Virus record (IMG/VR): IMGVR_UViG_3300005253_001115
Coordinates: 1 to 64,000 of that record
Direction: 5' to 3' (one strand)
DNA: 64,000 nucleotides
The notes under the pieces: model-generated
Told to the model about the DNA's origin: nothing
Databases searched by the model: none
Seen by the model: only the letters and a program-made list of their open reading frames with translations
Translations under genes and position numbers: made by a program
Shown here: piece after piece, positions 10,908 to 24,116 of the stretch
Position numbering within the stretch: the first letter of the stretch is position 1
Layout of the letters: every line of letters starts with the position of its first letter

Positions 10908-11347
10908 TCCTTCTCCAGAAGGACATCACAACAGTACAGGCCCCCGCCCTCATCGCGCACGGAGTGAACTGCTCCGACGTGATGGGGAGTGGGGTGGCCC
11001 GAGCCATCTACATGAGGTGGCCGACCGTGAAGGCCATGTACCACAAGGAAGGTTCGATGCGGCTGGGAGATGCCCAGTTCGTAGAGGTAGAAGATGGGCT
11101 GGTGGTGGCTAACTGCTTCACCCAGTCTGAGTACGGTAGAAGCGGAGAGCGTTACGCAGCTCCGGGTGCCATTAAGATGGCTCTATCAACGGCAGCCTGT
11201 GTGGCAATGGACCGAGGTCTGGACAAGGTACACATCCCCAGGATCGGCTCTGGTCTTGGGGGCTTGGATTGGTACGAGGACGTGGTTCCGGCTCTATTGG
11301 AGATCGAGAAGCACGCTCCCATTAACTTCGTAGTTTGTGATGTCTGA
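10904..11347 (+). CDS. macrodomain protein (Poa1p/TARG1/DarG-like ADP-ribose hydrolase)
   Basis: KDIT...IAHGVNC..MGSGVA and PRIGSGLGGLDW; domain begins upstream of the GTG at 10964, implying a CTG start at 10904. Confidence 0.8.
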   Translation: MILLQKDITTVQAPALIAHGVNCSDVMGSGVARAIYMRWPTVKAMYHKEGSMRLGDAQFVEVEDGLVVANCFTQSEYGRSGERYAAPGAIKMALSTAACVAMDRGLDKVHIPRIGSGLGGLDWYEDVVPALLEIEKHAPINFVVCDV

Positions 11348-12005: not shown

Positions 12006-12173
12006 GTGGGCGAAAAATGTGAAAAGTGCGATCATGGTGAGCATGCGCCCGGCAAGTGCGAAGTCCTCCACGTCTATGCGAGAGGCCCGAACGACCCGCC
12101 GGGGAATCGGCGCTGTTTGTGCGGATACGTTTTTGAAGACTTCACCACCCAGAGCAACGGAGATGCAGAATGA
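12006..12173 (+). CDS. small Cys/His-rich protein (55 aa, not in ORF track)
   Basis: GAGGAG RBS plus GTG; CEKCDHGEH...CLCG; ATGA overlap with the next gene. Confidence 0.55.
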   Translation: MGEKCEKCDHGEHAPGKCEVLHVYARGPNDPPGNRRCLCGYVFEDFTTQSNGDAE

Positions 12174-12754
12174 GTCTGGTACCGCACAAGTGCAGATGTG
12201 GGCAGTGTTTTCTGGAGATGCCGGAGACAGTACCACAGTCCAGAGGAGGACTGTTTGACCAACTCATGGTGCTAACTGCGGTGGCTGGGCACTTACAGCG
12301 GTCAGGAGAGCATCATTCAGCAGAGACGATTATAGAGGTGCAGGACAAGCTTTACACTGGGCTAGCGGCTGCACTACGAAAGGCAGAAAAGGGGGCGATA
12401 GCTCAGCAGGGAGAGCGCTTGAATATTCAAGAGGTCCGGGGTTCGAGCCCCCGTCGCTCCACCATTATTTCTGACTTCTTGGCGTCACTTCGTATGTACG
12501 AGTTCAACGCGATGGATTGCGGGTCCAGGCGGGTAATAAAGCTGTCCGTGGACGATATTGAGAAAGATTTCCTCGATGAGCTAAAGTTTGTGGACCAACT
12601 TCCCGAAGATGGTATCACAGGAAGAGCCCTGGAGCTTGCGGACCTTGTGTCCGATATGATCTGGGGCGGAGCTAGAGGCTGGGAACGCGCAGATCAGGAG
12701 CAGTTTGAGCACTTGAAGCGTGAAGCCGGGAAGAGAATGAAAGTAACCAACTGA
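12170..12754 (+). CDS. hypothetical protein containing an in-frame tRNA-like insert
   Basis: 194-aa ORF stays open across 12392-12464. Confidence 0.6.
   Translation: MSLVPHKCRCGQCFLEMPETVPQSRGGLFDQLMVLTAVAGHLQRSGEHHSAETIIEVQDKLYTGLAAALRKAEKGAIAQQGERLNIQEVRGSSPRRSTIISDFLASLRMYEFNAMDCGSRRVIKLSVDDIEKDFLDELKFVDQLPEDGITGRALELADLVSDMIWGGARGWERADQEQFEHLKREAGKRMKVTN
12392..12464 (+). tRNA. tRNA-Ala with the anticodon precisely deleted
   Basis: cttgaat-attcaag versus cttgaat-GGC-attcaag in tRNA-Ala(GGC); G3.U70, D/T arms and ACCA intact. Confidence 0.85.
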
Positions 12755-12773: not shown

Positions 12774-12965
12774 ATGGCCGGTACAAAGACTCAGAACAAG
12801 AACATGGGCAAGCGCGGAACGACGCAGCGCGACCGGTTCCTCACGGGCACGGACACGCCTGTGATTCGCATCATGCTAGGCGGCAAGCGGCGCTTTGTGT
12901 GGGGAGTCAAGAACACAGATGGCGGATACCGCCACGTCGATATTGCAGAAACCGAGCTTCGATAG
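12774..12965 (+). CDS. small basic hypothetical protein
   Basis: GAGGA RBS, 63 aa. Confidence 0.6.
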   Translation: MAGTKTQNKNMGKRGTTQRDRFLTGTDTPVIRIMLGGKRRFVWGVKNTDGGYRHVDIAETELR

Positions 12966-13018: not shown

Positions 13019-13095
13019 CGCGGGGTAGAGAAGTCTGGCATCTCGCAAGGCTCATAACCTTGAGATCGGAGGTTCGAATCCTTCTCCCGCTACCA
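13019..13095 (+). tRNA. tRNA-fMet(CAT)
   Basis: C1.U72 mismatch, CT-CAT-AA loop, CCA. Confidence 0.88.
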
Positions 13096-13100
13096 TTTTA

Positions 13101-13356
13101 CGGCTTATCCTTAGGCTGTAGAAGAAGCCGCGACAGGCGGCACAGACCGCCTCCAGAGGGGCTTCGAGGAAGGGAAATCCCGACAACAAAGTCCGCCCTG
13201 GTTGCGGAACCAATGTAGCTCGGTCAGTAGGCTTCCTTTTGTGCATGTAATGTGCATGTGGTCGCGACAGGCGACCGCGGTAATAACGATATTATGACCC
13301 AACAATACCCGCCAAGCCTCTCTACGATGCTCAAACCGGCGGGTTTTTGTTTTTTC
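13101..13356 (+). ncRNA. uncharacterised multi-hairpin RNA with GACAG hairpins copies 4 and 5 and a 3' terminator
   Basis: Hairpins at 13127-13141 and 13258-13278, several further helices, acccgcc/ggcgggt plus T-run. Confidence 0.6.
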
Positions 13357-13374: not shown

Positions 13375-13542
13375 ATGGACGATAAAGAGATCGAGATTGC
13401 CATTGACCAGTGGATTCGTGAGGTAGATTCTGCTAACCTAGAGCCTGAGGAGCTTGCTCTCTCTTTCCAGGCTCTCTGCACGGAGTTCGACATTCCTGAA
13501 GACCTTGGAAAGAAATTTGTTGCTTCAGCACTAGAAGACTAA
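13375..13542 (+). CDS. hypothetical acidic protein
   Basis: ATG after the terminator, 55 aa. Confidence 0.5.
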   Translation: MDDKEIEIAIDQWIREVDSANLEPEELALSFQALCTEFDIPEDLGKKFVASALED

Positions 13543-13585: not shown

Positions 13586-14125
13586 ATGTCTGTTAAACGA
13601 GCGGTAGGTTATTGTGAGAAAGTGAACTGTGAGGACTACGCCAAGGGCGTATTCCTGCTCAACCACGGGGATACCTTCTACTGCCCCAGGTGCCGAGACA
13701 TAGGTGCTGTGGTAGCAGAGAGAGGCATCCATAGTGCAAAAGACGGTGTATCTTTCAAGGAAGTCAGGGTTGAATTCAACTACGACCCTATCAACAGACG
13801 TTTCAAAGAAATCGGTATCGTCCGAGACGAGTCGATCTGGGGCTCTGGCAGTACATACACGCTGCTCAGTCCTCTCATCAAGACCGAGAAGAGAGCCCTC
13901 AAGGTTGCAGAAGCGATCCTGGCCAATCTCCAGCGCTATGCAGACATTCTGGATGACGGCATTCCCAGAACCACCGAGACCATTGTATCTTTCGATGATG
14001 ATATCAGCGTCTTCACGGACAAGATGAGGCGTCTTGGTGCGGAGTGGGAGAACTCGAATCTCTCAATAAAAAGGCACGTCCGAGCGTGCAAGGATAAAGG
14101 GACTGCATGGCAAGAAATGGCATGA
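13586..14125 (+). CDS. hypothetical zinc-ribbon protein
   Basis: CEKVNC...CPRC; GGAG RBS. Confidence 0.7.
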   Translation: MSVKRAVGYCEKVNCEDYAKGVFLLNHGDTFYCPRCRDIGAVVAERGIHSAKDGVSFKEVRVEFNYDPINRRFKEIGIVRDESIWGSGSTYTLLSPLIKTEKRALKVAEAILANLQRYADILDDGIPRTTETIVSFDDDISVFTDKMRRLGAEWENSNLSIKRHVRACKDKGTAWQEMA

Positions 14126-14328
14126 TCGAAGTAGAGGGCTCCGTGGAGAAGATCCTCGGTGGCGGAATCTACGACGTTTCGGTGGACGGGTCTACTAGAC
14201 ATGTCATGGCCAAGCTGAGCGGTCGCCTACGCCAGTATCGAATCCGGGTCCTCCCCGGAGACAAGGTACGACTCGAAGTCTCGGAAGCCGACACTACAAA
14301 AGGCTTCATCGTTTACAGAATTGGCTAA
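14107..14328 (+). CDS. infA: translation initiation factor IF-1
   Basis: IEVEGSVEKIL...AKLSGRLRQYRIRVLPGDKV...KGFIVYR. Confidence 0.93.
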   Translation: MARNGMIEVEGSVEKILGGGIYDVSVDGSTRHVMAKLSGRLRQYRIRVLPGDKVRLEVSEADTTKGFIVYRIG

Positions 14329-16736: not shown

Positions 16737-17024
16737 ATGATTGTTGCGTACCACGGCACTAGCCGGGAGAATGTTGATTCCATTTTGAAAGAAGGATTTC
16801 GAGTAGGTACCTATTTTGCCTATGCTATCGAAAATGCTAGAAAATTTGGTGGAGAGTGTGTTTTTGCTGCACAGTTCAACGAAGACGGATTTCGTGGGGA
16901 TAATGACGGATGGCAGTTTCATCTTCGCGATCCTCTAGCGCCAAGCGAAATTCTGTGGTTTGGGTCGTCTACATCCTGCGGTGCTCCGACGGCACGCTGT
17001 ACACCGGGTACACGAACGACATAG
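16737..17024 (+). CDS. small protein with ADP-ribosyltransferase-fold-like YHGT motif
   Basis: [18 protein letters not shown]...GTYFA. Confidence 0.5.
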
Positions 17025-17221
17025 AGGCTAGGCTAAAGAAGCACAATGCCGGAAAAGGCGCGAAGTACACTAGAAGTAGGCTACCAACAGTAGTCTGCTA
17101 CACCTCCCGGTGGGGCAGTAAGTCGCTCGCTATGCGTTGTGAGGCTGACATTAAGAAGAAGACGCGAGCCCAGAAGCTAGCTCTCATTGAAGATCGAGAC
17201 GAATGGGGCTATGGTGACTAA
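16955..17221 (+). CDS. GIY-YIG nuclease, YhbQ/UPF0213-like
   Basis: [18 protein letters not shown]...[15 protein letters not shown]. Confidence 0.85.
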
Positions 17222-19496: not shown

Positions 19497-19910
19497 TTGG
19501 CTGGAAGAAATAAATCACCCAATTGTAAAAATGGTCACCCGTTTACAAAAGAGAACACGCAAGTACGGCCTAACGGCGCTCGCAGATGCCGTACCTGCCA
19601 TAGAGCGGAAAACCGAAAATACGATAGAGCAAATGTACTGAAGAGGCGTGAAGGGCAACTCAAGATCAAGTACGATATTTCTGCTTACGACTACGAAGAA
19701 ATGCTGCGCAGGCAAGGTAATGTTTGCGCTATATGCAAAGAAGGTTCTGATAAAGTTTTTCATGTAGATCACGATCATTGTACTGGGGAAGTTCGTGGAT
19801 TGCTGTGCAAGCCATGTAACGTTGGTTTGGGTTGGTTCAGGGATAACCGGAAAGCGCTTTTGGAAGCTTCAGAATACTTGCTTCAAGACTCCAGAAGTGG
19901 CCAAAAATAA
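19497..19910 (+). CDS. endonuclease VII-family (HNH) homing endonuclease
   Basis: CAIC...VDHDH.TGEVRGLLC..CNVGLG. Confidence 0.88.
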   Translation: MAGRNKSPNCKNGHPFTKENTQVRPNGARRCRTCHRAENRKYDRANVLKRREGQLKIKYDISAYDYEEMLRRQGNVCAICKEGSDKVFHVDHDHCTGEVRGLLCKPCNVGLGWFRDNRKALLEASEYLLQDSRSGQK

Positions 19911-20164: not shown

Positions 20165-20239
20165 GGCCCTTATAACTCAATTGGCAGAGTGCCGGGCCTG
20201 AAGCCCGGATGTTGCAGGTTCGAGTCCTGCTAAGGGCCA
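20165..20239 (+). tRNA. atypical tRNA: 8-bp acceptor (His-like G-1:C73), loop CC-TGA-AG
   Basis: Perfect stems, no U33, no CCA. Confidence 0.6.
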
Positions 20240-20247
20240 CAGAGAGT

Positions 20248-20360: not shown

Positions 20361-20380
20361 TTTGATTACGAAAGGATAAA

Positions 20381-20652
20381 CAGACGGGCGGACAATCGCT
20401 CCAAGGAGAGGAAAGTCGGGACTGCACGGTACAGCCTAGAGGGTAACACCCTTCCACCGTGAGGTGCGTGACGGCAACAGAGACGAGCCTATTTGGTTAG
20501 GTTGAAACGGGCGACAGCGTGGGCGCAGCAACCGAAAGCAGGGGACATTGATCGTACCAGAGAGTCCCCGGGTATCGGGCAAAGATTCTAGTGGTAACAC
20601 TAGAGCAAGACGAATGATTGTCGATAACAGAATCCCGCTTATAGCCCATCTG
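20381..20652 (+). ncRNA. rnpB: RNase P RNA (compact, bacterial type)
   Basis: GAGGAAAGTCGGGAC and AACAGAATCCCGCTTA (P4), GCAACAGAGA, TGAAACGG, terminal P1 cagacgggc/gcccatctg. Confidence 0.93.
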
Positions 20653-20670
20653 CAATTTTAGGAGAAGAAC

Positions 20671-21280: not shown

Positions 21281-21326
21281 CCGGGTGTAGCGCAGTCTGG
21301 TAGCGCGCCTGCTTTGGGAGCAGGAT
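21281..21326 (+). pseudogene. 5' half of tRNA-Pro(TGG), T arm and acceptor 3' strand lost
   Basis: D arm and cctgc-TT-TGG-GA-gcagg intact, then sequence switches. Confidence 0.8.
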
Positions 21327-21419
21327 TTGGGTGGCACTACTTGCCCAGAAAACTTACAGCCTTTGTGCCTTAATTGCCATAGAGACAAAACGGTACAGGA
21401 GTCGAAAAATAGAAAATGA
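21327..21419 (+). pseudogene. C-terminal remnant of an HNH endonuclease
   Basis: LGGTTCPENLQPLCLNCHRDKTVQESKNRK-stop, no start. Confidence 0.75.
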
Positions 21420-24018: not shown

Positions 24019-24116
24019 AATGAAGTCAGAAATCCGAGTTCGAGTCCCGGCGGGGATCTTACCGCGACAGGCGGTTGATGTTCCCTGTAGGTTAATTGGT
24101 AAACCACTGGCGCATT
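24019..24116 (+). ncRNA. second circularly permuted tRNA mimic (YrlA-like topology) with GACAG hairpin copy 8 (24061-24075) capping the acceptor-like stem
   Basis: gtcag..T arm (TTCGAGT)..cgggga/tccctg..ggtt-AATTGGTA-aacc D arm..ctggc. Confidence 0.75.

Follow-up and report, generated by a model that had tools for sequence, protein, structure and literature searches.

The 3′ end of a noncoding stretch in a 266,640-bp marine-sediment phage genome is an abiF RNA, a near-perfect copy of the small RNA that bacteria use to silence the AbiF suicide toxin. No gene for this toxin was detected in the phage record. We therefore favor, with moderate confidence, the hypothesis that the RNA is a decoy antitoxin made together with the phage tRNAs, which would keep the AbiF of a host inactive. 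The region examined lies in a window of 64,000 nucleotides, which constitutes the first 64 kb of IMG/VR record IMGVR_UViG_3300005253_001115. CheckV estimates this record to be 89% complete, and neither end repeats nor an integrase gene were found. The first 24 kb carry 33 tRNA genes, all on the + strand, and a reduced bacterial-type RNase P RNA.

An earlier note, made from the sequence alone, described positions 13101-13356 as an unclassified structured RNA of ∼250 nt between a tRNA-fMet and a terminator, with no credible ORF, two GACAG hairpins about 130 nt apart, and five additional helices. All of these features are present, and the observation is confirmed. The upstream neighbor and probable cotranscript is a tRNA-Met (anticodon CAU) at 13019-13095 (+), which was called by ARAGORN and by the Rfam tRNA model (55 bits). 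It has an encoded CCA and an unpaired, initiator-like 1:72 position. The next ORF downstream is short and starts at 13375. The two GACAG pentaloop hairpins are at 13127-13141 and 13258-13278, with loops 134 nt apart. The first has a 5-bp stem, and the second, which is invariant in four phages, has a stem of up to 8 bp. The gcctc/ggggc (13149-13162), tgcat/gtgca (13241-13257), and taata/tatta (13279-13299) helices all appear in the minimum-free-energy fold, although only tgcat/gtgca is also present in the four-sequence consensus fold. The tggtt/aacca and gaccg/cggtc helices are possible alternatives to the pairs preferred by RNAalifold.

The + strand of positions 13096-13356 folds at −101.1 kcal/mol, compared with −80.6 ± 4.8 kcal/mol for shuffled sequences (z = −4.25), and none of 200 shuffles was as stable. 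The − strand gives a z of −2.75. ORFs that overlap the region have no family hits, and natural variants from other metagenomes carry 1-nt indels at positions 13099, 13122, 13162, and 13285, which a coding frame would not tolerate. The region is therefore noncoding. A search for similarity to cultured phages over the whole region recovered only the tRNA.

The interpretation offered in the note is only partly supported. The stretch is indeed a structured, noncoding RNA region that follows an initiator-like tRNA-Met and ends in a terminator-like stem. However, "unclassified" is wrong for its 3′ part, since a match to a known family, which the note had named as grounds for refutation, was found with Rfam. 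Positions 13308-13344 (+) match the abiF RNA model (RF03085) over its full length (1-37 of 37) at 59.4 bits, against a gathering score of 37, with E values of 1.1e-10 to 1.3e-8. Of the 37 bases, 35 are identical to the consensus, and every pair is canonical. The motif has a 6-bp P1 (CCCGCC/GGCGGG), a 3-bp P2 (AGC/GCU), an 11-nt loop, and a 6-nt 3′ bulge. It is the only abiF motif in the record, and no second motif, as occurs in RCd22, was found upstream at E ≤ 10. The only other Rfam match between positions 12950 and 13450, apart from the tRNA, is a subthreshold rnk leader match that reuses the same stem. A U-run follows P1 directly (13345-13356), and together they look like an intrinsic terminator that ends the tRNA-Met/RNA unit. 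P1 plus TTTTTGTTTTTT was seen in the sequence but was not listed by a simple terminator scan, probably because that scan allows loops of only 3-8 nt.

The abiF motif was first defined by its position upstream of abiF (Abi_2) genes. [quoted passage not shown] The RCd22 RNA of C. difficile neutralizes AbiF in cis and in trans by direct binding (10.1101/2025.04.15.648962). In a cryo-EM structure, each AbiF monomer of the HEPN dimer holds one RNA, whose single-stranded bulge blocks the active site (reviewed in PMC12737573; PMC13064643).

The phage motif shares the sequence, secondary structure, and short ACA-type leader of AbiF-linked bacterial copies, as well as the U-rich tail that often accompanies them. 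Its P1, P2, and bulge are identical to those of a copy beside an AbiF-like ORF in a Desulfuromonadaceae MAG, from which it differs at only one loop base. In contrast to known abiF loci, a six-frame search of the entire 266,640-bp record revealed no Abi_2 (PF07751) match at E ≤ 0.001. The neighboring ORFs, which encode a 55-aa protein, a 179-aa zinc-ribbon protein, and an IF-1 homolog, have no Abi_2, PADLOC, or Pfam defense hit. Thus, the locus does not have the paired RNA antitoxin and protein toxin of a type III operon. The motif also differs from known examples in that it is a single copy, whereas RCd22 has two motifs, and in that it lies in a tRNA region, 213 nt after tRNA-Met, where it is preceded by clade-specific RNA modules.

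Three relatives were recovered. These are L141 (90.6% identical), L140 (84% identical), and L005 (from a 184-kb contig whose neighboring protein is 77% identical). All three keep the order tRNA-Met, a spacer of about 220-230 nt, abiF motif, and U-run. The motif is unchanged except at two positions in L005, one of which is the consensus-variable loop base. The flanks diverge, however, and the 55-aa ORF comes and goes. This pattern indicates that the motif is under selection. A more distant relative, L006, keeps tRNA-Met and two hairpins but has an ordinary terminator at the equivalent place and lacks both the conserved core described below and the abiF motif. Other phages have the abiF motif without the rest. 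The modules are therefore separable, and the region is not a single RNA fold.

To examine whether orphan copies are general, IMG/VR was scanned with an exact 21-nt loop pattern, which returned at least 119 loci. Among 121 copies, 105 keep at least five of six P1 pairs, with 49 distinct P1 sequences, which is evidence of covariation. Abi_2 is present in only 5 of 100 whole records, and in 2 of 21 records that are at least 90% complete. Of 79 copies with at least 1.1 kb on both sides, only four have an adjacent AbiF-like ORF. Many of the contigs are fragments, a limitation that these three counts address only in part. The genes downstream from the orphans are unrelated to one another and include those for phosphoesterase, integrase, capsid, and sigma factor proteins. 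Bacteria give the opposite picture. All three species genomes with the same P1 have an AbiF-like ORF directly after the motif, and in 151 genomes of the class of one of them, 16 of 18 motif matches are directly adjacent to an AbiF-like ORF. A relaxase-bearing element, L004, shows the canonical layout of motif, Abi_2 gene, and second motif.

The viral copies are also associated with tRNA genes. When the clade of this phage is excluded, 8 of 120 viral copies start within 15 nt after a same-strand tRNA, against 0.40 expected, and 19 start within 400 nt, against 5.5 expected. Of the 185 tRNAs in those loci, 175 are on the strand of the motif. Among 108 unique contexts, 27 directly abut a tRNA (8 after one and 19 before one) and 37 lie within 400 nt of one, although some tRNA-adjacent copies could lie at provirus ends. 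In L117, another phage fragment (positions 590-797, − strand of the locus), a dense array of about 20 tRNAs ends with an initiator-like tRNA-Met followed by three tandem abiF-like hairpins (36.3, 33.4, and 52.8 bits) and a U-run. This layout is reminiscent of antitoxin repeat arrays.

Three cultured phages also carry the motif above the Rfam cut-off, in unannotated intergenic DNA near or inside tRNA clusters, and no Abi_2 was found at E ≤ 0.001 in their complete genomes. These are Acinetobacter phage Acj61 (77195-77235; 58 bits), Mycobacterium phage Thibault (90374-90409; 54.9 bits), which is among the cluster-J-like mycobacteriophages, and Synechococcus phage S-SZBM1 (31410-31454; 55.7 bits), in which the motif lies between tRNA-Pro and tRNA-Ala. 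About 38 Mycobacterium phage records give the same BLAST match as Thibault. No paper in the literature searched mentions orphan phage abiF RNAs, although this search did not extend to the primary AbiF structure report (Zilberzwige-Tal 2025; Cell), where such orphans might already be mentioned.

The remaining modules of the region have different patterns of conservation. A trailer hairpin (13096-13125) directly follows the tRNA, and its loop length varies among relatives, with insertions in L141 and L140. The gcctc/ggggc hairpin at 13149-13162 differs in sequence in every relative, but a hairpin is kept, and variation in natural populations concentrates at positions 13148-13162. The small tgcat/gtgca hairpin carries a one-sided U-G to C-G change in L141. 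The AU-rich taata/tatta hairpin is diverged in L005, where another local hairpin can be drawn by eye. A single-stranded linker, CAACAAUA (13300-13307), precedes the abiF motif, and an ACA/AAUA-type leader recurs before abiF motifs in other phages and in bacteria.

Between the two GACAG hairpins is a 73-nt core (13166-13238), in which positions ∼13174-13231 are almost invariant in four phages. RNAalifold predicts an irregular rod with a closing helix (13166-13172/13232-13238), followed by CCGAC/G.UCGG, ACA/UGU, and UCCGC and GCGGA flanking a 7-nt loop. Because the four sequences do not vary here, there is no covariation for or against this fold. The closing helix of L005 might be paired, judging by eye, with a one-column register shift and different bases. 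No cloverleaf was called by ARAGORN within 13096-13307, and the core has no Rfam or tRNA match at E ≤ 10. A covariance model of the core found only one copy in the genome and no homolog in 100 loci, other than a weak match (E = 9.9) at positions 6118-6190 of L030. This match lies 26 nt downstream from the abiF motif of that phage and is probably due to chance. A 7-mer and an 11-mer shared with locus L002 upstream of its motif were not supported by the model. A 20-mer from the core is absent from 185,579 species genomes, whereas a 16-mer gave 14 viral hits that are chance matches, except for the known relative.

The note proposed that the two GACAG hairpins are tags of a bivalent scaffold RNA, which is not supported. 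The 11-mer CGCGACAGGCG occurs eight times in the window (seven exact and one with a single mismatch), all on the + strand within 1-24 kb, against 1.44 expected. Two more exact copies lie on the − strand near 253 kb, and the outer stem pairs covary among the 10 genomic copies. Most copies lie a few to about 80 nt from a tRNA or tRNA-like 3′ or 5′ end, and two of them flank tRNA-Ser at 20165-20240. A relative, G004, has seven copies, all on one strand of its tRNA region. The hairpins are therefore a clade-wide element of tRNA-region transcripts rather than tags specific to this RNA, and they probably act as punctuation, either as processing sites or as protein-binding sites. Like the boxB-type hairpins of lambdoid nut sites, they have a 5-6 bp stem and a pentaloop, are strand-specific, and are repeated along an early transcription region. 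However, this resemblance is an analogy that rests on the hairpins alone, with no boxA or N-like protein identified; the loop ends in G and does not fit GNRA-like folding, and the hairpins sit next to tRNA ends.

Taken together, the sequence analyses establish the family membership of the 3′ module, its orphan status, its conservation while the flanks drift, the contrast between phages and bacteria, and the linkage to tRNAs. Expression of the RNA, binding to AbiF, and protection of the phage are inferred. In the mechanism we propose, the RNA would be transcribed with tRNA-Met, its 5′ side would be freed by tRNA 3′ processing, and its 3′ end would be set by P1 and the U-run. The abiF hairpin would then bind the HEPN RNase dimer of a host that carries AbiF, exactly as the host antitoxin does. 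Type III systems of the ToxIN kind are thought to fire when phage-induced shut-off of host transcription lets the labile antitoxin RNA decay, and the decoy would prevent this. No RNA run was found to hold the sequence. The same phage or close strains occur in several studies, none of which has RNA data. In addition, no promoter-like site was found between the preceding ORF and tRNA-Met, including a sigma-70-like site directly upstream of the tRNA. The model also does not explain the upstream 210 nt, including the core and the dispersed hairpins.

The direct precedent is pseudo-ToxI of Pectobacterium phage ΦTE (PMC3475682), a phage-borne RNA that resembles a host type III antitoxin, is carried without the toxin, and lets the phage avoid abortive infection. 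That RNA corresponds to a different toxin family (ToxN rather than HEPN AbiF) and a different fold (pseudoknot repeats), and its function was shown genetically, whereas that of the abiF orphans is inferred from sequence alone. The abiF orphans also appear to be widespread in wild phages rather than arising as laboratory escape mutants. Counter-defense elements in or beside a phage tRNA cluster, and expressed with it, are exemplified by tRNA-Tyr and Rad of phage T5, which act against retrons (bioRxiv 10.1101/2023.03.15.532788), although those are a tRNA and a protein rather than an antitoxin-mimic RNA.

Other explanations are possible, but each seems unlikely. The motif could serve only in cis, as an intrinsic terminator or attenuator that closes the tRNA-Met unit and gates read-through into the downstream genes for the 55-aa, zinc-ribbon, and IF-1 proteins. 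Consistent with this possibility, which cannot be excluded, P1 is followed by a U-run here and in L005, L140, and L141, RCd22 also acts in cis by premature termination (10.1101/2025.04.15.648962), and L006 has an ordinary terminator at this place. However, a terminator needs only a GC stem and a U-run, whereas the loop, P2, and 3′ bulge match the AbiF-binding consensus almost base for base and are nearly unchanged in relatives. Furthermore, only 17 of 120 viral copies have a T-rich tail, many copies sit inside tRNA arrays a few nucleotides before the next tRNA, and downstream genes are unrelated across phages. A role in tRNA-array RNA metabolism, such as a processing signal, a stabilizer, or a decoy for RNase P, Z, or E, would fit the strong same-strand association with tRNAs and the fact that this phage encodes an RNase P RNA. 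This reading is less likely still, since the same motif in bacteria is tied to AbiF genes rather than to tRNAs and is experimentally an AbiF antitoxin, and two-thirds of the phage copies are not near tRNAs.

It is similarly doubtful that the phage copies belong to a toxin–antitoxin pair used for superinfection exclusion or addiction, whose toxin, for example a divergent HEPN protein, is not recognized as Abi_2. Some mobile elements and proviruses do carry complete abiF RNA plus Abi_2 modules (L004 and records G055, G080, and G085), and 22 loci share a downstream phosphoesterase (phrog_547). However, the genes next to the motif are diverse, and in this clade the 179-aa neighbor also occurs without the motif in L006, L007, and L008. 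The existence of complete modules might also suggest that the motif is a decaying relic of an ancestral module. This is very unlikely given that the motif is near-consensus and almost unchanged across phages whose surrounding DNA is 74-90% identical, that no AbiF pseudogene was detected in six frames, and that about 95% of viral copies are orphans with intact, covarying P1 stems. Equally improbable is the single bivalent scaffold, despite the fact that two identical pentaloop hairpins flank the core and are both kept in L005, L140, and L141. The same hairpin occurs at eight other places in this genome, mostly beside tRNAs, copy 1 sits at a different position in L005, and the modules occur independently of each other.

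AbiF is a widespread abortive-infection toxin and the proposed ancestor of Cas13, and its RNA antitoxin was characterized only in 2025. If phages routinely carry this antitoxin without the toxin, then this would be a second, natural, and apparently common case of RNA-based antitoxin mimicry after pseudo-ToxI, and a counter-defense that protein-centered screens cannot see. It would also give a new reason for phage tRNA clusters, which would carry and process small anti-defense RNAs. A more speculative possibility, which we regard as tentative, is that phage tRNA arrays act as launch pads for counter-defense RNAs. In this view, abiF hairpins in one to three copies, embedded in or beside the tRNA clusters of many unrelated phages (including T4-like, cyanophage, and mycobacteriophage isolates), would be released by tRNA processing to neutralize a host HEPN toxin that may itself attack tRNAs. 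The invariant 73-nt module in this clade could then be a decoy for another RNA-binding defense protein.

Additional features were observed in these phages. The RNase P RNA is of bacterial class A (20380-20657, +; 149 bits against a gathering score of 100), is shortened to 278 nt relative to the 367-position model, and sits right after tRNA-Pro. At 12392-12464 (+), ARAGORN calls a tRNA of undetermined identity with an odd anticodon loop (Rfam tRNA, 54 bits). It lies inside a mechanically called 194-aa ORF (12170-12754), which is therefore doubtful. T-arm-like and tRNA-like sequences not called by ARAGORN lie at ∼1020-1088 and 24038-24058 (+), directly before GACAG hairpins at 1093 and 24063, and the first has an anticodon-loop-like CTTTAAT. 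Rfam also calls a tRNA at 21281-21349 that ARAGORN misses. L006 (785-1147 and 1486-1560) encodes a tmRNA (140 bits), and the two hairpins after its tRNA-Met have the same stem type but a GATTA loop instead of GACAG, a variant that is local only, with two copies. A repeated GGCGCTACAGGCG-type sequence at 64.9-85 kb (+) of record G000 is picked up at one mismatch from the hairpin pattern but is not a hairpin. Finally, the IF-1 homolog (PF01176, 1.5e-16) is encoded about 1 kb after the initiator-like tRNA-Met, with a Macro-domain protein, a GIY-YIG protein, and an endonuclease VII nearby (14107-14328, 10964-11347, 16910-17221, and 19497-19910, all +).
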